Below, one piece after another: positions 36,886-52,659 of a stretch of 64,000 bases of DNA. The notes under the pieces are model-generated. The model was not told the origin of the DNA. It made no database searches and worked only from the letters and a program-made list of their open reading frames with translations. Position 1 is the stretch's first letter. The number at the start of each line of letters is the position of its first letter. A program made the translations under genes and the position numbers. Origin of the DNA: Macrostomum hystrix (Eukaryota > Animalia > Platyhelminthes); assembly GCA_950097015.1 (NCBI GenBank), contig CATNEN010000002.1:7068001-7132000 (forward strand), given 5' to 3'.

Positions 36886-37649
36886 CCAGTCAATCGGGTC
36901 ACTGGATGAGCAGAAAAAACAGTTCTCTAATTGACAGAGTCAATTTCAAGGCACGCGATTAAAATAAAACCTCAGCAATCCAGACTTTCAAGACCAATTA
37001 AAGAGCTCCCATGCACTGCTTGTGATTAAAAAATTCTATTATACTCGTAATTCCTGTGACACGTGGCTTTTTGAGTGTACCGATGTTGCATATGCTGTGT
37101 TTTTTCCTGCAATCTGACAATCAAAGAAGCCGAAATGTGTTTGCATCAAATTCAGGAGGGAAGCGAAGAAAAAGGCAGAAAGCAGAAAAAAACTGCAAGA
37201 CATTAGTCGTACTGGTTTTTCAAGGCAAAAGTACGAGCGTAAAAAGAAGATTGCGAGCTGGTTTCCAGTTTAGAGTGCTCTGATTTTAGCACGCTATAGT
37301 CTTGATCATTGCTAGTCTGGCGTCAATCACCAACAATTCATTATTTTCAAGGCTTCTTTTTTTATAGAGACCTCACCTGCATGGCAACACGACAGTAACC
37401 AGAAATGCAAGACAATCACTAATGGCTTCGTGGTTAAAAAAATAATTCTAAAGCAGTCGCTGCCATGCTCCATTGATTGTCATCATCATTGTCATGCCAT
37501 TGCTTGTGGCTCCAGAAATAGGTGCTAAAATATAGAGCAAAAAATAAGGAAGCATGTTGGTTCTCATCGGATAATCAGGTATTTATCTGCAATCACCATG
37601 GAAATGGAAACATGATTAAACCTATTGCGAGTCCAGTTTCAAAAATGTT

Positions 37650-38820
37650 CTGGATTTTCCTGGCGATTGGTTGAATATCTGAGCCCGTGTACTGGGTCTT
37701 CCTGGCGATTGGTTGAATATCTGAGCCCGTGTACTGGGTCTTCCTGGCGATTGGTTGAATATCTGAGCCCGTGTTCTGGATTTTCCTGGCGATTGGTTGA
37801 ATATTTGAGCCCGTGTTCTGGATTTTCCTGGCGATTGGTTGAATATTTGAGCCCGTGTTCTGGATTTTCCTGGCGATTGGTTGAATATTTGAGCCCGTGT
37901 TCTGGATTTTCCTGGCGATTGGTTGAATATCTGAGCCCATGTTCTGGATTTTCCTGGCGATTGGTTGAATATCTGAGCCCATGTTCTGGATTTTCCTGGC
38001 GATTGGTTGAATATTTGAGCCCGTGTTCTGGATTTTCCTGGCGATTGGTTGAATATTTGAGGTGTTCTGGGTTTTCCTGGTGATTGGTTGAATATTTGAG
38101 GTGTTCTGGGTTTTCCTGGTGATTGGTTGAATATTTGAGCCCGTGTTCTGGGTTTTCCTGGTGATTGGTTGAATATTTGAGGTGTTCTGGATTTTCCTGG
38201 CGATTGGTTGAATATTTGAGCCCGTGTTCTGGATTTTCCTGGCGATTGGTTGAATATTTGAGCCCGTGTTCTGGGTTTTCCTGGCGATTGGTTGAATATT
38301 TGAGGCGTTCTGGATTTTCCTGGCGATTGGTTGAATATTTGAGGTGTTCTGGATTTTCCTGGCGATTGGTTCAATATTTGAGCCCGTGTTCTGGGTTTTC
38401 CTGGCGATTGGTTGAATATTTGAGGCGTTCTGGATTTTCCTGGCGATTGGTTGAATATTTGAGGTGTTCTGGATTTTCCTGGCGATTGGTTGAATATTTG
38501 AGGTGTTCTGGATTTTCCTGGCGATTGGTTGAATATTTGAGGTGTTCTGGATTTTCCTGGCGATTGGTTGAATATTTGAGGTGTTCTGGATTTTCCTGGC
38601 GATTGGTTGAATATTTGAGGTGTTCTGGATTTTCCTGGCGATTGGTTGAATATTTGAGGTGTTCTGGATTTTCCTGGTGATTGGTTGAATATTTGAGCCC
38701 GTGTTCTGGATTTTCCTGGCGATTGGTTGAATATTTGAGCCCGTGTTCTGGATTTTCCTGGCGATTGGTTGAATATTTGAGCCCGTGTTCTGGATTTTCC
38801 TGGCGATTGGTTGAATATTT
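37650..38820. repeat. 42/39-bp minisatellite (CCTGGCGATTGGTTGAATATTTGAGCCCGTGTTCTGGATTTT)
   Basis: Visible array with two interspersed unit lengths. Confidence 0.95.
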
Positions 38821-39237: not shown

Positions 39238-42200
39238 CTATAGAAACACTCCGTCGGACTCTTCGTCAACGCTGTCCGCCGGGGGACTTCTCTCGGCCGA
39301 GCCCGCCACCGAGCGGTGATGCAGCTGCACCGGCTCGTCGAATTCGAAGCCAAAGTTTGTCTGTGTCTGCGCGCACGACTGCGACTGGGAGCTGGTCCTG
39401 GGCTCCAAAGCCAGCTCCTTGGCAGACGACAGCCGGCGTCGATTCTCCAGGTAGGCGGATATTGTCTCCAGCACCTGGCGCCGGTGCAGCTTCTCCTTGC
39501 TCTCCCTGCAGAACATTCGCAGCCTGGAGACAGTGTACAGGTACGGATTCAGAGCCGAGTTGATCGGCAGCGCGAATATCACGAGGCCGGTGGTGGTTGT
39601 GCGAGAGATTTTGTAGCCGGACGAGACAAGAAGAAACAGAACAATTGTTGGCAGCCAGCAGATCAGGTCAGTCAGGACCAGCAGAAACAGCCGGCGAGCC
39701 ATCAGGTGATCGATGTCCATGGCTTTGCGCTTCGCCTTGCGGCGAGTGTTTTTCAGGTGCAGGAACACGCGCAGGTAGCAGCCAGTCATGAAGGCGAACG
39801 CGGCGCAGTTGTACACAATGGCAACCAGCTGCGGCAGTCGCTGGATCATGGAAATCTGACCGTCAAGGTAGAAAGGCGAGCAGGCAGCGTTCAGATTGTA
39901 CGGCATGATCTTCCTCACCGTGGCGGACAAAGCCAGCAGCGAGAAGCCGGTCGCAGCCAGCCACGTGACCGCCACCACGGCAGCCACCCTCTGCAATGTC
40001 CAGCCGTGCTTCTTGAAGCGCTGCACGGTGAGCTTGAAGCGATCAAAGGACAGGAAGGCCAGGATAGTCACCGACACTTCGCTGCTGACCGTGGCCAAGA
40101 TCGCGCACACGGTGCAAAGGCTTGACGCACGCCACTGGTCGTCGTGAGCAATGTACTCGTGTCGATAAGACGTGTCAGTGCCGGCAATGATGAGCAAGTA
40201 GACAGCCATGAGCAGGTCGGCCAAGCTCAGATTGAGAATGAGAAAGTCCGTGGTTTTTTTAAACAGCTTCTTCACTAGGCGCCACGCGATGACGAAGAGA
40301 TTTCCAACCAGCGCGAGGCAGCCGAAGATCCAGACCATGACCTGCTGAGCCAGGTCTCCCAGAAGGTCATCGCACGAGCTGAAACCGTCGGCTGGCGGCG
40401 TGCAGTTCACGGCCACGACGTCAGCCAGGCAGCAGAACTTAAAGGAGTCGGTGTACAGGTTGTCCAGCCGCTCCAGCTTGGAGAAAGTCCTGATGGGAAT
40501 GAAGACGTCCGGGCCGGTGCCAGACAGGTCCAGCACTCGGAGCTGCCTCGGCCCGCCCTCGAAAGCCAACTCGTCGATAGTGACCAGCGGGTTTCGGCTG
40601 AGGTTGAGGTGCCGCGTGTTGTTGCTGCCGTAGAAGGCGTAGCTGGGCAGGCTGACGATGCTGAGATTCGACAGGTCGAGCTCCGCCACCAGCGGCAGGT
40701 GGGCGAAGCCGTAGCTCTCGATGCTGACGATCGGGTTGCCTCGAATGAGCAGCGTGGTGAGCCGCACCAGGCCGGACCAGACATTGCTGGGCACGGAGGC
40801 GATCTCATTGTTGCTTAAGTCCAGGTAGCGCAAATTGGCCAGGCGGGAGAACAGGCCAGCCGTGATCTCCTTGATGCCGGCGCTGCGCATCTCCAATAGG
40901 CCGAGGAGCGCCAGGTGGTCGAAGTCGCCAGGCCTGGCAGACAGCTGCGTATTGCCGCTGAGGTACAGGGCTCTGGTCAGGGGTGACACAGTCTGGTTGA
41001 TGTTGAAGCTCAGAGGACGCAGGCACTCGGTGATATAGCCGCGGCAGTTGCAGGGCTGGCGGCACTGCATGTCGCAGAAGGCCTCGTCCTCGGCATACCG
41101 GCAGTGCGGCACGCCATCGCAAGCGTTTTCGACCGGGACGCTGATGACAAGAGGCCGCGGGGTGGCGTGTGGACTGAGGCAGCGAAGGTGGCCGGCCAGC
41201 TGCGAATTCGTTCAAGGGGTTGTTGGTCAACTACTTGCCGATTATCCCAAAATTCCGCCTCGCGGAATCCCATACTCCTCATCCCGAAATCCCGAAATCC
41301 AACATACTAAAATACCACACCCAAAAGTCCCGCATTCTAAAATCATCTGATCTCACATTGCTATATCCCACACCTCAATATCCCACATCCCAATATCCCA
41401 CATCCCAATATCCCACATCCCAATATCCCACACCTCAATATCCCACATCCCAATATCCCACATCCCAATATCCCACATCCCAATATCCCACATCCCAATA
41501 TCCCACATCCCAATATCCCACATCCCAATATCCCACATCCCAATATCCCACATCCCAATATCCCACATCCCAATATCCCACATCCCAATATCCCACATCC
41601 CAATATCCCACATCCCAATATCCCACATCCCAATATCCCACATCCCAATATCCCACATCCCAATATCCCACATCCCAAACATCCCGAAGACGTGAACCTC
41701 ACCAGCGGTGGCTGCTCGCAGTCGATTTCGTCGGCACCATCGCTGCAGTCCTGCATGCCGTCGCACAGGCGGTAGACTGGCAGGCAGTAGCCGGCCGGAC
41801 ATTGGAACAGGCGCCGGCAGCCGAATGAGGCGCCGCCGCCGGCCCCGCAGCTGCGCAGGTGCTCCATGTTAGGGCACACCTGCTTGCCGAACTGCCGCCT
41901 GTCGAAGACGCAGGCATTGTTCCTCGGGAAGCACTTGACGTGGTTGAACATGCAGCGCTCCCATTGGCTGTCCGGACAGTCCGGGAACTCCAGCGAACCT
42001 GGATCGATGACGTTCTCGCCGCGGGTGCAGTTGTTGGCCCGCAGGCAGGTCATGGCTTCGTCCTCCAGGAGGCTGCCGGGACAGTCGACCTGCGTGTCGT
42101 TCACCAGGCCGTTGGGAATGCAGCGGCCGCTCAAGCAGGAGAAGCCGTTGCAGATGTTGCAGTTCTGCTCGTCGCTGAGGTCCTGGCAGTCGCTGATCCC

Positions 42201-45200
42201 GTTGCAGCTGGTAGCAATGGGAAAATTTTCGCTGATTGTACTCAAGTAAGCACTGCGATTCATATTATCCTAGCATGAAGTCTAAAAGAGCATTCACAGT
42301 AGAAAGACTATAGGGGCATTTCCAATACACACATTTTCCGTAGTTCTGTATCTCCCAAAATATTGAACCAATCGCCATGAAAATCCAGAACACGGGCTCA
42401 AATTTTCCGCTCTATGCAACGAAACAGCTTCCAGAATTACAAAACATCGGCATCATCGAGATATTCAATGATTCTCGTCGGGGTGTCTGATGGCAAAAAC
42501 CATTGATACAGCAATGTACTGATTATATCGTTAAAGAATCGCTGAATATATCGACGATGCTGACGTCGCACAGCTTTGAAATTTAGTTCATCGTAAAGAG
42601 GGTAAAATGTATCCGTTTAGTTGACTTTCACGAACAAATTTCATTCAGTTTGGGGTTGGATATTTGAAACTCCACTCGTGGTCTTTCTACTGTTTCTCGT
42701 TATCTCTTATCAAAGAAAACTCATATTTAATTAAGCAAAGGTGTAAATCAAATATTGACACCGGCTTGTTATTTCGGGTTATCCGGTGTTTTCCAATAAT
42801 ACGAAATTATTACCGGTCAGTGGCCTTTGGAGATATTTTTGACCTCCATTCTCATAGACATTTTTAGAACTGCGGCCTAGCATTATAAAGCACAGGTCGG
42901 CAAAGCTATGTCTCGGAGAAGACGAAATCCAAGAAAGATGAGACAAGGGAGAGTCAAGGGACAATGGAGAGATGAGACAGGGAGAGATGAGACAGGGGAG
43001 AGATGAGACAGGGGAGAGATGAGACAGGGGAGAGATGAGACAGGGGAGAGATGAGACAGGGAGAGATGAGACAGGGAGAGATGAGACAGGAAGAGATGAG
43101 ACAGAGGAGAGATGAGACAGGGATGAGATGAGACAGGGAGAGATGAGACAGGGAGAGATGAGACAGGGAGAGATGAGACAGGGAGAGATGAGACAGGGCA
43201 GAGATGAGACAGGGAGAGATGAGACAGGGAGAGATGAGACAGGGGAGAGATGAGACAGGGAGAGATGAGACAGGGGAGAGATGAGACAGGGATGAGATGA
43301 GACAGGGATGAGATGAGACAGGGGAGAGATGAGACAGGGGAGAGATGAGACAGGGAGAGATGAGACAGGGGAGAGATGAGACAGGGATGAGATGAGACAG
43401 GGAGAGATGAGACAGGGAGAGATGAGACAGGGAGAGATGAGACAGGGCAGAGATGAGACAGGGAGAGATGAGACAGGGAGAGATGAGACAGGGGAGAGAT
43501 GAGACAGGGAGAGATGAGACAGGGGAGAGATGAGACAGGGATGAGATGAGACAGGGATGAGATGAGACAGGGGAGAGATGAGACAGGGGAGAGATGAGAC
43601 AGGGAGAGATGAGACAGGGGAGAGATGAGACAGGGATGAGATGAGACAGGGAGAGATGAGACAGGGAGAGATGAGACAGGGAGAGATGAGACAGGGAGAG
43701 ATGAGACAGGGAGAGATGAGACAGGGGAGAGATGAGACAGGGAGAGATGAGACAGGGGAGAGATGAGACAGGGATGAGATGAGACAGGGATGAGATGAGA
43801 CAGGGGAGAGATGAGACAGGGGAGAGATGAGACAGGGGAGAGATGAGACAGGGATGAGATGAGACAGGGAGAGATGAGACAGGGATAAGATGAAACATGG
43901 ACAGATAAGTCAGCCAGGAGCTCAGCCAGCTTTGCTCACCGCTGATCACTCGAGATGCACTCCATGCTGCGCTTGCAGCGGAACTCGCCAGCTCTGCAGG
44001 CCTCGAACTGGCAGTTGGCCTCATCCATGCCGTTGCTGCAGTCTACCCGGTGGTCGCAGAGCCTTGACCAGGTGATGCGCTCGGAGTCATTGCTGCCGCA
44101 CTCGAAGAACTGATCCACAATGTCCGAGCTGCAAGCCATTTCGTCTTCTCCGCCTGAAGCAAAATGGTCTCGATTTGAGTTCTGTGATTTATTAACTTGT
44201 CGGCGCAAGACTCTTGGAAGACAGAAATCTTTTTAGACAAAAATCTTGGCTAATTCGCTTAAAATCAGCAATTTTCAATAAATTTTTCCACTTCAATTGA
44301 GAAAAGAATTTATAGATTCGCCCACTCACTCGGACAGTCCTGCTTTCCGTCACACAGTCCGTCGCTGCTAATGCAGGTGCGATCCAGGCAGGCAAACTGG
44401 TTGCTTCGGCAGCCCACCTGCTGAGCCACGGGGCTGCGCACGCACAGCACGGAGCGAGTCGGCAGTTTGTCGATCTGGCCGTCCTTCCGATGACGTCTCG
44501 ATGACGAGGTCGACAATGAGGCGTGGTTGAATAGCGTCGCGGTTCTATCACTCAGGCTCTCCGGTCCTTGTCTAGATGTCGTCCGAGTGAAGACGTCCGA
44601 CAGATCGTCCTCATCAGCCTCAGCGCCAGCAGATGCTTCGTCAGCGAACAGGGTCCGGTCGGAGGAGAACACGAAAATGCGGCCCCGCTGCACCGAGTAG
44701 CGCCAGACGCGCAGCATGTCATTGTACGGCTTCTGCTTTCCGGGCTCCTTCGGCAGAGTGGCAATCTGGCCATTGAGCTGCTCACACATGAGCCCGGCAT
44801 TCTCCAAGGTGAGCTCGGGCTCCACAGCGCTACTGTTCTGTGTGAGCAGCATGTAGCACTGCCGCTCATGCTCCAGCCAGTTGTCGGTGCAGGCCGGGCT
44901 GTCGGATCGGATTTTCACCATTTGCTGCTGGAAGTGGCGCTCAAGCTGGCTCTTTTGGTTCGTGTCGTCCGTTGACCGTTCGCAGATGTGGCTCTGGCCC
45001 TTGATCTCGATGTTGCAGGGCACCTTGATCCAGTTTGAGTGGTGCCGCGGGTTGTGCAGCATCATTCCCACACAGGGATAATTGGGATCATTGCTCGGCT
45101 GCGGGAACTCCTCGTTGATGAAGGCCTGGACGTTCGGCGAGGACCGTGAATAGACAGTCTCGTAGTGCGAGGGGTACCACTCGTGGAAGATGAATGGCTC

Positions 45201-48200
45201 GCCGTTGCTCCATTCGAAGTTCTGTTCCAATAGTTGAGTTCAAAAAGGAGGAATACAAAAATAATTTTGCTACCTAAGGACACGAGGGTGAATGGCAGAA
45301 TGGTCTAACGCGTTTGCCTCTCGCACCAAGGTTCATTAGCTCGATTCCACGGCGAGGCCACATTCAGTTTGGTAGCAGTCGCGGAGAAGCTTGGGGGTTG
45401 TCGACCAACCTTCTAGCCACAGTGAGGATGTACACTGCCTGTGTAATTGTGTCTTGCGTACGGTATCTATGTGCGTGTGTGCTCAGGAGTCAGCGGAATG
45501 GGCAGAATTGCCTCCTCGGTGGTTGCGGGTCTAGTGTCACCGAATGATGTATCAGTGCCCACCTGCAAATATCCTTATTATTACCAAGGACACAAAGATG
45601 GGAATCCGAAGTTTGGACCTCATAGAAGTTTTCCCTTCGATGCCAATAGTGTCCTACAGCACCCTCACATTGCTCAGGTAGAAGCTTTCGGAGTAGAAGT
45701 TGCCGTCAGCCGCCGCAGCTCGACCGGAGTGGAGCTGGCCCAAGCGCACCTCAGGCCGCGCCCGCAGGCCGATGTAGATGAACACATCCGAGTGCGCGAA
45801 GGCCTCCGTGTGCCACTCGTGCAGCAGCATCTGCTTGATGGCATTCATCTCCTCCTGGCTCTGGATGCTGACCAGGTGGCCGCCAAGCTCGTTGCACTCG
45901 GCGGCGGCTCCGTCCCAGGACATTGGCGCACTGGGGCGCAGGTAGCGATAGCAGGAGTCATTGTGCCTCAGCCAGCCGGGCCAGGTGCACTGCCCGAACT
46001 GCATGCGGTCCGTGTCCCGCTTCAGCTTGAACGAGATCGAGAAGCCGTCGTAGGAGCTCTTCGTCTGGGAGATCTTGCTGGCCTGAGTGAAAAATTGAGA
46101 TTGAGATTGCCCACTTCACGACAGCTCCCAAGCCGAATAACCGGTTTTTGTGAAAGTCCACCATTTGAATCAAAATTTTCCACTCTTTATGATGAACTTA
46201 TTTTTTAAAGCCTTGCGAGTCAGCATCTTCGAAATATTCAGCGACTTATGTCGAAAACCCAGGTGACAAGAACAAGTAACACTGCTCTTTATAGCATAAT
46301 CCATTGTTTCAAAATGGCAAGATAAAAAAATTAATCAATCCAAAATAGTTAAAAATGATAGCCAACATGATGACAAGATAACATTCTGTGAGCAGAAAAA
46401 TATGCCTTTATTTATGGTTCTTGCCCCCAGACACTGCGACAAGAATCGTTGAATAACTCGACGAGACCGATGTTTCGTTAATTGTTAATCGGATGGAGCG
46501 GAGCCCCGTGTTCTGGATTTTGATGTCGATTGGTTTAACATTTTAGGATATCCAGAAAAAGAAAAATGCTGGAAGAAATGACCTCGTGGTGTTTCTACCG
46601 GTAAAGTGTCTGCAATGTTTCCTAGTCAATCGTAAGTGGCATGACATACCAGAAACATCAGCAACAGTTTCCGACTTGAGATGGTCGAAAACTTCTCTCC
46701 TTTCTTGTAGCCGCACAGGGTTGTCTCCTTGCTGAACGAGTCGTTGATCGATTCGGACATGAGCAGTTTGCTGTTCAGGCACACGTCAAGATTGAAAACG
46801 TCAAGCGAGAACTCGTAATAGGAGCTCGGGCTGTCCGACTCGACCCGGCCTCTGTGCGGATCGAAAATCCAAACCAGCGGCTCTTCGTAGTTCTGATAGG
46901 CGAACGGGTAGTTCGGCGTTTCCAGGAAACCGCACTCCGTCTGCACAATCTGCTCGCCGCCGGTGTTCACGCTCTTGATCTCATTGTGCGGCACTCGCAC
47001 GCGGCACTTCTTCTCCAGGTGAATGGACCAGTGATCGGGTGAGTAGGCGCAGGTTGAGGTGTAGCTCACTGTCACCAGGAAGGATCCATTTACCTGTTGG
47101 CGAACGAAATTGAGCGCTGACGAGCAGTTGGTCTTCTCAAACATTGACAGCGGACCCGCGAGGCTCTCAGTCTCGTTCAGGGAAATCAGCGCTGTCAAGA
47201 ACTTGGTGGTTAACAGCGAGAACACAAGATAAGGCTCCGATGTTACGAAGGTAACCGAATGATTCGACTGGCTGTTGATGCTTCGCTTCGCTGGCGAATG
47301 CAGCAGGATGCAGTTTGCGTCCCGCAGCTCGCCCTGCTGCTTCCAGAAGTTGACGTGATCGCAGATGTATCGATTGACGTAAAATCTAATTACAATGCCA
47401 TCTGGGACAACCTGCTCTTGCTCCCTCAGATCTTCGTAATAATAAATCCAAGTTTCGACGGTTTTGTTCCTGGCCATGACTATGATGGGGAAGAAGCTGG
47501 ACGAGCAGTAGGGGCCCTCGGTCTCCTCGTTGCCATCAGCATCTGTCAGGATTATGACGAAGCCGCTCATTCTGCAGCTTGGGTCCAGCGGGTCCTTGTA
47601 CAAGCTGAACTGGGTGAAGTTGAAGTACAGATCAGATTTCCACTCAGTCGATTGGACCTGAAGCGGCACAATGACCTGCACTGAGCGCTGCCTGGGCTGT
47701 ATTTCGTGCATCTTCGTCTGCAACGCCTTGTAGGTATAGACGAAGCTGAAGTTTCGAAAGTTAGCTACTCTCGAGTCCTGCTGGATTTCGTTAACGTCGC
47801 TTGTCCAGTTCAGACCGACATCCCTCAGTCTGCTTGCCCAGACCGTCAGTTCCAGAGGCTCCGAGACCTGGGCATTCAGGGAGAAGACAAAGACCATCAT
47901 TTGCGGTGACATTCTGTCGAAGGTGACGTGGTCTAGGCAAGTCAAGCCCGTCAGGTTAGGCTCGTTCATGAAGTTCTGGTCCCGAAGGTCCTTGGGTGTC
48001 GGAGATGCCATCAGCCGGTCCGAGTAGGCCACGACAATGTTCTTGAAGCATTCGCTCTGGTTGTGTGACGTCATGTTGACAAAAGACAGATGCGCGCTTA
48101 GCTTTCTGGCGTAGATGGTTTCAAACTTGAAGATGTAGGTGCTGTGGTGGTACCACATGTGCTCATTGTTCAGCTCCGTTATGTAGTTTGGAGCCAGCTT

Positions 48201-49718
48201 ACTGAGATCAATTGACACAGACTCGCCATCCGTGAGCTTGAACTCGTCGATTCGCCGACGATACTCCCACTCCTCCTTCTCCACATCCGTGTACCGAATG
48301 CTGAACTGGCTGGTGGACTTGCTGTCGGTTCTGAAGGCGATGGAGGCCATCTCGGCGTTGATGTGATAGTAGAAGGGGGTCCGAAGTCCGCAGCCGAAGT
48401 CCGTGAAGGTTTCATTGCTAATCGCATGGATTATCTCGAGTCTGTCGTAGACGCAACTAGACCCGGAGTAGTCCAACTGGAAGGACTCAAAGTCCAGAGA
48501 GATCATCTTTCTTGGAGAGCTGGAAGTGACGTTCACATAGCAGAAACTGACTCGGTCCGCGTTGGGTCTGTAGAGAGACACAATGCTGTCGGTTGTGGCC
48601 TCCATGTTGGCTTCGCTGCCGATGCAGTACACGGGCAGGTACTGGGACAAGGTCACACTGAAGCCGGTCTTCTCTATCTGGCTGTCGGATCGGAAGGTTA
48701 GTCTAACCTCTGAGCTGTTGCTCTTCCAGGTGGTGTCCCTGAGGCCGCCGCCAAGTTGGCAGGTGTTGCTGCAGCATTCGACGCTAGGCGAGCTGCCATC
48801 CTCTACCAGCAGGCTGTCGCGTACGCAGGACAGATCGTCGGAGGCTTCGACGTGCAGGTGGGTGAATTTGATCTGGAAAATCGCGCCTGGCTCCGTGGCT
48901 CGAATGAGCACGGAGCAGTTTGAGTTGGGCGGGTACAGGTCGCTCAGGTTGCTAATTTTCGGGGAGTGAATGGTGATGAGGGAGCGCTGGACATTGGGAC
49001 GGGTCGAGTGCAGATGGCAGATGTCGAATCTGAAATAAATCAAAAATATGTTTTCTATACTTTTGAGCAGCCCACCGAGAGCCTGAGGATCGCTGGACCA
49101 TCTGGGAACTGGAGAGACGAAATCCCCGCCTGCTTGGCTGTCCTGAAGATACGCTAAACAAATAGGAAAACTAATGCACTATTTAAACAAAAAAACACAG
49201 GTATTGCTGTTTTCTAAAAGTTAAGCTACATTGCGCTAAAATCAAGCTATTAGTAAAAAATGTTTTCTGCATCAAAACTTTCTACGGCTGCTAAATGGCA
49301 ATTTTTGTCATTGAATTTTTTTTGTACAATAGTGTACTTTCGGGACAGCCAATCAGCCTACACTGGTCCGGAGAATCGGGTTTGGCGGGTTTGGGTTTGG
49401 GGTTTGGGGTTTGGGTTTGGGGTTTGGCGGGTTTGGGTTTGGGGTTTGGGGTTTGGGGTTTGGGTTTGGGGTTTGGGGTTTGGGGTTTGGGGTTTGGGTT
49501 TGGGTTTGGCAGGGAGTTGTTGTCTCTCCGGCCGGTTTCTACATTCAGAGCTCCATGGATGGAGAGCAGCTGCTGACTCACCCGGCATCCACAAACTTGG
49601 GGTGGTACAGAGAGTGCAGCAGAGCACTGGCTGAGTACGAATCATCATGCTGGTGGCTGTGCGGCTGCGGCAGCTGCAGACACACCAGGGCGAAGATTAG
49701 GAGGCCGAACCGCTCCAT
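39238..49718 (-). CDS. GRL101-like (LGR type C) GPCR with a CUB-CTLD-LDLa-LRR ectodomain, complement(join(39238..41199,41703..42207,43940..44153,44330..45221,45669..46082,46650..49029,49582..49718)), 2167 aa
   Basis: All six GT-AG introns are phase-consistent (6504 nt). Signal peptide, at least 3 CUB-like domains, 2 C-type lectin domains, about 7 LDLa repeats, LRRs, hinge FKFCC...SSCDDLL, and 7TM with SFDRF and NSALNPYLY. Confidence 0.88.
41362..41680. repeat. 15-bp intronic minisatellite (CCCAATATCCCACAT)
   Basis: Visible array. Confidence 0.95.
42960..43890. repeat. 12-14-bp purine-rich intronic minisatellite (GAGATGAGACAGGG)
   Basis: Visible array. Confidence 0.95.
45284..45570 (+). mobile_element. 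SINE family A copy in a GPCR intron
   Basis: A-box/B-box head and 3' end GGTCTAGTGTCAC...CCTGCAAATA match 14645-15007. Confidence 0.8.
49378..49509 (+). repeat. Telomere-like (TTTGGG/TTTGGGG)n tract in GPCR intron 1
   Basis: Visible array. Confidence 0.9.
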
Positions 49719-50534: not shown

Positions 50535-52659
50535 TCAGTGCTCAACGTGCAGGGTCTTCACGTGCTGCTTCCTGTCTCGCTCCTGGTGGACCCGGTCCGT
50601 GTCCCGGTGGCTGTGCCCCGTAGCTCGTTCCAGCTCGGCGACAGTTTTGGTGCTGCCCACAGCAGCCAAGTCCTGCATCAAGTTGTAGTCGGCCGCTGAG
50701 GCTGGGCGAGCTTTGACACCTGAAAGGTGAGAATTAATAGTGGCGATTTAGAATGATAATTAGGCGTAAAAGTTTTTTTTTTAATTGCTAACAATTGATT
50801 GCACCTGCCCCAATTAGGCCAGATGTGCAGCCGACAGCACAGCCGCAGCTGTTGCTCGGTGCATCTGAAGGCTGCGTACAGCTGTTCAGTCCATGGACTG
50901 GGGGGACGCCACACCCACCCTGAATTACCCCAGCTAACGCTGGTACCCATTTAACAGCTGGGTGAACTGAAGCAATGCAGTGTTAAGTGTCTTGCTAAAG
51001 GACGCAAATTGTTCCAGTGGAATCGAACCCACGACCTTCAAGTCGTGAGTCTGACGCTCTAACCACAAGGCTACAACCTCCCATGTGGTCCCCTGTGAGA
51101 GAATGCCTGATGACTAGTGCACAAATGAGCAGTTTCAAAGTTTTACTGGATAAAAGTACAGGCTAGCACCATCTAGGTAATTTGAAGGTAACCCTATCGT
51201 AGGTAATCCTATCGTAGGTAATCCTATCGTAGGTAATTCGGATACAAATGCACAAAAATAAACAGGAATATCGCTATAAAAGCATGTTGGTGCACAGGTA
51301 TTTACACAGGTACCACATCGGTAGACAGGTACACAAGTTCGCAATGCTGAACGTAAATAGGTATTCGCAGGTGATCATTATGATTATGATTATGATTAAT
51401 CATATGATTATGATTATCATTGAAAAATTCTAACGAATCCAAGAAAATCCCACCATCGAATTCTCCGTGGCCAATCACAATGCGCTTCAAAGCTCGCCAC
51501 CACCTGCTCAGGAAGCCTTCATCGTCGCTGTCGGCGAAGCCGGACGGCTTCGATTCGACGCCGGGCACACCATCGGCGGCAGACTTCAAAGCCGCGCTGT
51601 CGGCCTTGCTGTGCAGGTGCTGATGGTCCGGGTTCGAATCGCCGTGCATCAGGCCGTGCATCAGGGTCTCCTGGACTCAGGGTCACAGGGCGGAAAATAA
51701 ACTACCTTTTTCAGGAAGGTTTCGGGTCATTCTACTCATTACTAAAATCCCTGAGCACACACTCACACAGGGTGTGTACATCTGCCCTGTCAGGCTGTGT
51801 ACACTTTCACTGTTCTTTGGAGGCTGGCCCTCAAGGGCGTAAATTTCACGACAAGCCCAAGCCTTCTCTCCGCGGCTGCGCCCCAAATTGATGTGGCCTC
51901 GCCGCGGAATGGAGCTTAGGACCTTGGTGCGAGAGGCAGACGCGCTAGACCGCTGCGCCACTCAGCCTCCCCACAACAGCAAGTTGTTGGCTAGAGCATC
52001 GGGGGTTCGATTCCCGACTATGCTGGGACAATGGAATTGGCACTCGAATTACTAAAAAGCCTCCCAGGTAACAAGTACTTGAACGCTTCTCTGAGCACAG
52101 TCGGAGCTCTGCTCACCTGGTTCATCGGTCTGTTGTGTTCAGCTCGCTTCTCCACTGTCGGCGCCGGATCGTGCGAGTGAGTCGACCCGGTGTTGGCGTC
52201 GCCGTGCATCAGCACACCGTGCAGGAACTCCTCCTGGTTCAGCTGGCCGGGCTTCTCACCCGGCTTGGCTGTCTGGCCTTGCAGCTCTTCGCGACGCTTC
52301 TCGGAGTCCTCAACTTTGTGACTGTCGCCAAGAGCATTGTCACCGTGCATCAGCACCCCGTGCAGGCAGTCCATGCCAACGCAGGGACCTGGGTGGGCAT
52401 TGTCATTCAGTCTAGAGTACAGGAGTGCAGTACAGGTTCAGGGACTTGAGAACACTGTCATTCAGTGTGGAGTTCAGGAGTTCAGTACAGGTTCAGGGAC
52501 TTGAGAACACTGTCATTCAGTGTGGAGTTCAGGAGTTCAGTACAGGCTAGGCTTCAAACGGAACTCACCAAACACCTTTCCTTTCCTCGGAGGCGCAGCA
52601 TGCGTCGCTGCAGCTAGAAGCAGGAAAATAATCTGCAGTAACGGCCGCCGCTGCATCAT
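50535..52659 (-). CDS. Orphan secreted His-rich repeat precursor, complement(join(50535..50719,51454..51670,52117..52388,52569..52659)), 254 aa
   Basis: Signal peptide MMQRRPLLQIIFLLLAAATHAA. Four exons are phase-consistent (765 nt). Three repeats of (L/M)HG(V)LMHGD; KRR, KR, KR and RK sites. Confidence 0.8.
50925..51085 (-). mobile_element. tRNA-derived SINE family B (V/Meta-like central domain); a partial second copy lies at about 54895-54955
   Basis: Minus strand GTGGTTAGAGCG...GGTCGTGGGTTCGATTCC, then CCTTTAGCAAGACACTTAAC...CACCCAGCTGTTAAATGGGTACC. Confidence 0.7.
51730..51972 (-). mobile_element. SINE family A copy in intron 2 of the His-rich gene
   Basis: Head and body match 14645-15007. 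Confidence 0.8.

Follow-up and report, generated by a model that had tools for sequence, protein, structure and literature searches.

We analysed a gene located on the minus strand, at positions 52659-50535, of a 64,000-nucleotide stretch of the genome of the flatworm Macrostomum hystrix (contig CATNEN010000002.1 of GenBank assembly GCA_950097015.1, positions 7,068,001 to 7,132,000 of the forward strand; this whole stretch is hereinafter the window, to which all coordinates refer). By the sequence features compared below, this gene is a short member of an unnamed and uncharacterised family of spiralian proteins built around a repeated HG[VI]LMHGD motif. Its 254-residue product would be a disordered protein, secreted or resident in the secretory pathway, that binds zinc, copper or nickel through modules of His, Met and Asp residues and belongs to a family restricted to Spiralia; we adopt this interpretation tentatively, as one that falls not far short of an even chance. 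The protein is secreted or lumenal, given its signal peptide, is disordered, and contains invariant His, Met and Asp residues in arrays; that the modules would bind metal is what we infer from the ligand-type nature of these residues and from their conservation.

Relatives were sought with a HMMER scan of 1.84 billion representative proteins, complemented by two word-indexed searches; the queries were exon 2 alone, the Macrostomum lignano orthologue BOX15_Mlig023571g1 (P0077) as a full-length proxy, and a profile of 25 members. With exon 2, phmmer retrieved 36 clusters at E<=1e-3, of which 19 reached E<=1e-10 (best E 2e-43), and the searches with P0077 and with the 25-member profile yielded 62 and 63 clusters, respectively. 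The preliminary description of this locus regarded the protein as an orphan, a view that has to be abandoned given more than 60 related clusters in four spiralian phyla and a syntenic orthologue in M. lignano. The homology search across flatworms and Spiralia that it proposed, here run with HMMER, recovered homologues, none of them from a characterised family, and its statement that no family is recognisable holds for curated families, Pfam and the PDB both being blank. Specifically, hmmscan against Pfam (E<=1 to 10; the four exons and eight homologues) returned nothing above noise, and a PDB sequence-profile search gave 0 matches at E<=10. In the ESM Atlas, there was no usable match for the Owenia member, and all scores for a Mytilus member were at noise level (<=0.78), with MEPE and SPR1 appearing as mere compositional look-alikes. 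No paper was found by searching the literature with motif strings or with gene and protein identifiers. The members of the family are already in public databases, yet unnamed and unstudied. Secreted, disordered repeat proteins rich in His are of a known kind; it is the module and the family that are newly described.

The named relatives come from bivalves (Sinanodonta, Potamilus, Mactra, Mercenaria, Mya, Mytilus, Solemya, Pinctada, Ruditapes, Ostrea, Saccostrea, Pecten, Tegillarca and Dreissena), the chiton Liolophura, the cephalopods Octopus and Argonauta, the annelids Owenia, Paralvinella and Dimorphilus, the nemerteans Tubulanus and Lineus and, among flatworms, Macrostomum. Examples are Owenia fusiformis CAH1798606.1 (P0010), Octopus bimaculoides A0A0L8G269 (P0017) and Pecten maximus LOC117341636 (P0022); all named matches are annotated as hypothetical or uncharacterised proteins or are plainly mis-named. 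As far as seen, the family appears to be confined to Spiralia, where it spans four phyla, namely, flatworms, nemerteans, annelids and molluscs. Gastropods, planarians, neodermatans, ecdysozoans and deuterostomes were not represented among the names of the matches, which is a non-detection only and no proof of absence. Many matches reside on contigs of 1-3 kb assembled from sequencing runs (Logan, RNA runs), and one cluster includes 201 member sequences, which is consistent with the family being represented by expressed mRNAs.

The core motif occurs 291 times in the 86 retrieved proteins, with the H, M and H invariant, and because of this recurrence the motifs of the window gene are beyond chance. 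The complete module can be described as GP-x6-[LM]HG[VI]LMHGD-x3-G-x2-H; it spans about 30-40 residues and is present in 1-7 copies per protein, spaced about 42 residues apart, with three copies in the window gene. In a logo built from 262 copies with full flanks, the core positions are H0 100%, G1 93%, V/I2 86%, L3 87%, M4 100%, H5 100%, G6 83% and D7 90%. Upstream of the core, G is found at position -9 in 66% of the copies and P at -8 in 75%, followed by a variable stretch of six residues, either C-x-G-M-D-C or an acidic x-D-A-E-E-x, and by [LM] at -1; downstream, three variable residues precede G (76%) and two more precede H14 (86%), which is often followed by another H and acidic residues. 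The cysteines of the module go together, being either both in place or displaced: 69 copies contain both, in 13 the downstream Cys alone is found at the standard offset, and in no copy is the upstream one found alone; the pair occurs most often in the first module. The modules are followed by a Y-x-x-W stretch, an ELMK[KR]RYL-type helix, a linker of acidic character and the motif D-x-RHDLExxG[ST]TxP. The median composition of the family is 8% His, 21% Asp+Glu and 11% Lys+Arg, with an isoelectric point (pI) of 5.05.

The assignment of the window gene to this family relies on several features. The signal peptide is followed by AP-x-x-basic, and a phase-1 intron interrupts the Gly codon before PC, a position common to Macrostomum, Owenia, Lineus and Liolophura; a marine metagenome fragment carries the same pair of exons around this intron. 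Three modules follow, the first with C-x4-C and the third with a one-residue deletion, and the distal elements are recognisable in diverged form, RWWRALKRIV corresponding to the ELMK[KR]RYL-type helix and DYNLMQDLAAVGSTKTV to D-x-RHDLExxG[ST]TxP. In addition, the similarity to members from other phyla is significant. The Macrostomum proteins retain all of these elements but differ from the other members in being shorter (254-277 residues as opposed to the typical 330-470), with three modules, in having no FSFPFISDT stretch, in substituting RWWRAL for ELMKxRYL in the helix, and in ending with HVEH.

The coding sequence consists of 765 nt, that is, 254 codons, none of them broken, distributed among four exons, and the ends of the feature coincide exactly with the first ATG (52659) and with the end of the stop codon (50535). 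All three introns are of the GT...AG type (donors gtgagt, gtgagc and gtggga, in this order, and acceptors ending in ag). The elements quoted in the preliminary description, namely, the signal peptide, three HG(V)LMHGD cores, the basic sites, FLSRWWRALKR and a His-rich tail, were all found in place on the minus strand within this coding sequence. The protein is indeed His-rich, but the share of His in the whole sequence is 8.3% rather than the approximately 10% initially given.

Exon 1 (52569..52659) starts with the putative signal peptide (52659-52597), in which two basic residues and a hydrophobic core of 13 residues are followed by T-H-A ahead of A-P, so that the -3/-1 rule predicts cleavage at THA|AP; a short basic stretch comes next, and the exon ends in phase 1, within a Gly codon. 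Exon 2 (52117..52388) encodes module 1, with the first core and the Cys pair (C-x4-C; 52386-52339), the helical stretch EKRRE (52302-52288), module 2 with the second core (52233-52198) and VEKRA (52155-52141). Exon 3 (51454..51670) begins with module 3 (51670-51638), the core of which, LMHG-LMHGD, is one residue shorter than its counterpart in M. lignano, and continues with a linker of low complexity, after which comes the amphipathic helix FLSRWWRALKRIVIG (51514-51470), which contains FLSRWWRALKR; the counterpart of this helix was modelled at residues 192-208 of the orthologue. The exon 3 donor, G|gtggga, is in phase 1. Exon 4 (50535..50719) encodes the conserved motif DYNLMQDLAAVGSTKTV (50690-50640) and the His-rich basic tail (50615-50538), and ends with the TGA stop codon (50537-50535).

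The proteins nearest to the product of the window gene are those of M. lignano. The orthologue in that species encodes 277 residues, is syntenic and breaks at the same intron positions, with 80%, 72% and 74% identity in exons 2, 3 and 4, respectively. The exon-wise comparison by the Nei-Gojobori method gave 0.18 nonsynonymous substitutions per nonsynonymous site (dN) and 1.04 synonymous substitutions per synonymous site (dS), hence a dN/dS ratio of 0.17, and the 220-Mb M. hystrix assembly contains a single copy of the gene. Because the exon breaks and synteny are conserved, the dN/dS ratio is low and the gene is single-copy, the locus is, as judged by these comparisons, an intact, real gene that evolves under purifying selection. 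The possibility that it is nonfunctional, either a chance chain of open reading frames or a decaying pseudogene, appears extremely improbable to us: although no transcript from M. hystrix itself was found in our searches, which speaks in its favour, the frame is intact, the junctions are canonical, the exon structure and synteny are retained, and the low ratio is maintained at dS of about 1.

Structure prediction is compatible with a largely unfolded protein. AlphaFold2 models of the M. lignano orthologue (51-row alignment) and of the Owenia member (72-row alignment) had predicted local distance difference test (pLDDT) scores of 66.7 and 63.4 and predicted template modelling (pTM) scores of 0.26 and 0.25, respectively; neither contains a globular core, and in both, each module core is modelled as a helix of short length. 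Also helical are the segment that follows the first module (it includes EKRRE in Macrostomum), the amphipathic segment and the tail, the longest helix in either model comprising 31 residues. The pLDDT of the Owenia protein in the ESM Atlas is 0.40. These predictions suggest an acidic, intrinsically disordered protein, the conserved parts of which are short helical elements. In the modelled core helix, H0, M4 and D7 are predicted to lie on one face, together with acidic residues at positions -3 and -4.

Metal binding, already suggested in the preliminary description, is a reasonable reading. Under the model that we favour, each module would contribute, as ligands, two or three His residues, a single Met and Asp/Glu, and would form a reversible, pH-dependent site for Zn2+, Cu or Ni2+ within the secretory pathway or outside the cell. 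The protein as a whole could then buffer or carry metal in a multivalent manner, or else form a matrix that self-assembles when triggered by metal, and the C-terminal helix and motif might provide the contact with a partner or the means of sorting. Several observations weigh against this model. Gly, Val and Leu of the core are nearly invariant, which exceeds the need of simple chelation and would also suit a short linear motif recognised by another protein, and the two His residues of the core, at i and i+5, are on different faces of the helix. The signal peptide was assigned by eye, by the -3/-1 rule, rather than with a predictor; and because the own-species transcript was not found, the exon junctions rest on orthology and splice signals. 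The restriction to Spiralia, in turn, is based on named matches only, many of the matches being unnamed environmental contigs.

The first of these observations is also an argument for an alternative in which the protein is a multivalent scaffold, with the HG[VI]LMHGD helix functioning as a short linear motif for a receptor, an enzyme or a chaperone and any metal binding being incidental. The non-ligand residues G1, V/I2, L3 and G6 are extremely conserved amid variable disorder, the copy number varies from 1 to 7, and there are separate conserved motifs in the C-terminal part, all as would be expected of such a scaffold. However, the invariant residues, His, Met and Asp, are typical metal ligands, and the neighbouring gene for a receptor with CUB, LDLa and LRR domains is linked to the gene within Macrostomum only. 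We consider this alternative unlikely.

Disordered secreted or lumenal regions with tandem short His repeats are known from the prion octarepeats, histidine-rich glycoprotein and histidine-rich Ca-binding protein, all of them His-repeat metal binders. The present family resembles these in organisation, and the pH-sensitive, multivalent binding of Cu or Zn that they display is predicted here. There is no detectable homology, however, and the module described here is longer, is predicted to be helical, contains invariant Met and Asp, and recurs at the spacing of about 42 residues given above.

An analogue documented in the literature is the mussel protein mefp-12, which is secreted and contains about 9% His, and from which a helical His-rich peptide undergoes Zn- and pH-dependent assembly and phase separation (PMC13022425). 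We cite it as an analogue only. Mefp-12 is described as being restricted to Mytilidae and as having six Cys/His globular domains and a central helix of 129 residues (PMC13022425), whereas the Mytilus members of the present family (P0051 and P0054) contain two Cys and show the spiralian layout. Identity of the two, considered in view of the share of about 9% His in both, is therefore unlikely; the distinction relies on the published description, that is, on the six Cys/His domains and the long helix, as opposed to at most 31 residues in our models, and not on sequence alignment.

The chemistry of mefp-12 and, more generally, of His and Zn in the byssus (PMC13022425) provides the precedent for another explanation, under which the protein is a structural, adhesive or matrix component cured by metal cross-linking, for example in adhesive organs, mucus, eggshell or seminal fluid of the flatworm; a secreted metal-binding protein of this sort was the second suggestion of the preliminary description. 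A His-rich, acidic, secreted protein is what this explanation calls for. Nevertheless, we consider it improbable, because the family is present in animals with very different secretions (octopus, chiton, interstitial annelid, nemerteans), because the gene is single-copy and under steady purifying selection, in contrast to the many material proteins that evolve fast and are multi-copy, and because the composition lacks the Gly/Tyr/DOPA-type bias of the known glues. The Mytilus members, with only two Cys, likewise do not fit the description of mefp-12.

The preliminary description proposed a neuropeptide or pheromone precursor, and a wider version of this proposal is that the protein is a prohormone or a granin-like cargo, either cut at basic sites into bioactive peptides or, similarly to the chromogranins, forming an acidic, aggregating granule matrix. 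The signal peptide, the acidic pI (about 5 to 6) and the disorder (pTM 0.25-0.26) are in line with such a role, by resemblance only, as is the Cys-x4-Cys loop near the N-terminus. Moreover, KR/RR pairs are in modest excess across the family (141 compared to 89 expected from shuffles), EKRR and VEKR are retained between the two Macrostomum species, and the family has a single conserved basic site, ELMK[KR]RY, in 40 of 70 sequences. The distribution of these sites, however, does not follow the repeats. A KR or RR pair is present in only 19 of the 202 spacers that separate one core from the next, and the cores lack a following Gly plus basic residues. In the family alignment A4, the K[KR]R[YWF] motif of the helix is the sole pair of columns that is dibasic in at least 15% of the members, and it accounts for 37 of the 138 KR/RR sites; the ELMK[KR]RY site lies within a predicted helix, and its P2 residue is Q, N, T or L in many members. 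All three dibasic sites noted initially are present in the window gene, but their conservation does not extend to the family: EKRR and VEKR are shared with M. lignano alone, and ALKR reads LKY in that species. EKRRE itself is part of a predicted helix and is replaced by EKLRE in Owenia, in the equivalent stretch after the first repeat.

Judged by the sequences compared here, the protein thus appears to lack two hallmarks of a multi-copy neuropeptide precursor, namely, repeats bounded by basic sites and the conservation of these sites in orthologues, and the proposal of a neuropeptide or pheromone precursor is not sustained. The granin version shares with chromogranin A/B and the secretogranins the location in the secretory pathway, the acidic and disordered nature of the protein, the N-terminal Cys loop and the scattered basic pairs; unlike the granins, however, the present protein gives no sequence match and no hit to the Granin Pfam model with hmmscan, its basic pairs are unconserved, and it contains a His/Met repeat that granins do not have. 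Taken together, a prohormone or granin-like cargo seems to us an improbable account of this protein, and the gene does not, on present evidence, belong in a list of new neuropeptide precursors.

The C-termini of the family are of several kinds. Many members end with H-D-E-[G/S/T/E], the flatworm proteins with HVEH or HREH, and others have unrelated tails. We observed that these ends, which are conserved across phyla, resemble HDEL without the terminal Leu (P0017, P0073, P0010, P0029, P0030, P0075 and P0076; positions 50538-50549 in the window). Retrieval to the endoplasmic reticulum by a KDEL-type signal, [KRHQSA]-[DENQ]-E-L, was considered for the HVEH and HDE[GST] ends and rejected because the terminal Leu is absent.

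The introns of the window gene are rich in repeats. Intron 1 (52389..52568; 180 nt) consists largely of a 55-bp tandem repeat (52401-52546; 2.7 copies, 95% identity). Intron 2 (51671..52116) spans 446 nt and includes a tRNA-like stretch (51860-52040) that resembles the head of a short interspersed element (SINE); because the intron at this position in M. lignano is only 78 nt long, the insertion is lineage-specific. Intron 3 (50720..51453) contains a microsatellite, a 15-bp tandem repeat (51186-51237) and one SINE copy. The microsatellite, (ATTATG)n at 51377-51421, lies just beyond the exon 3 donor and continues the open frame as an Asn/His run (NHNH...). This run is intronic and noncoding, the genuine His tail being encoded in exon 4. 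A gene caller or a reader that misses the weak gtggga donor would obtain a false Asn/His-rich C-terminus.

The SINE-like element of intron 3 (about 50880-51085) is approximately 200 bp long and has a tRNA-like head, which scores 23 bits with the Rfam tRNA model, against a cutoff of 29; ARAGORN detected no tRNA gene in the window. The genome contains no fewer than 2618 candidate copies of this element, and the 40 copies that were scored are 90-94% identical, which suggests a fairly recent burst.

The neighbouring region (39238-49718), which adjoins the gene, is occupied by the receptor gene mentioned above, a GRL101-like gene that encodes CUB, Lectin_C (C-type lectin), LDLa, LRR and seven-transmembrane (7TM) domains. 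Its position and orientation beside the gene are retained in M. lignano (L008:9904-14803), and no such linkage was found beside the family genes of Owenia, Lineus and Liolophura. The adjacent receptor had been considered as a conserved partner and, the linkage being seen only within Macrostomum, was dropped as evidence. Near the start of this neighbouring region, at about 37645-38268 on the minus strand, there is a long in-frame tandem array of HGL[KR]YSTNRQENPE with a 42-nt unit, detected through a weak tblastn match, which may be a coding-like minisatellite or an exon of a repeat protein.

The gene itself is unremarkable in that it is real and conserved; more striking is the family, which the results presented here show to be one that is present in at least four spiralian phyla and has a nearly invariant nine-residue core, yet is without a Pfam entry, a solved structure or a paper that we could find. 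In its most general form, our interpretation is that the HG[VI]LMHGD helix is an undescribed module that binds either Cu/Zn or a partner, has persisted nearly unchanged since the spiralian ancestor and defines a Spiralia-specific secretory family, which might be a counterpart of the granins or of vesicle metal buffers, or an extracellular carrier; this is possible, but we regard the chances as being rather against it. With the neuropeptide claim falling away, a false lead is removed, and what remains is a well-defined, deeply conserved family that can be tested, Macrostomum lignano being a tractable model for RNA interference and in situ hybridisation. If the modules do bind metal, they would represent a new natural His/Met/Asp binding motif, and the family would offer an entry to how molluscs, annelids and flatworms handle metals in their secretory pathway.

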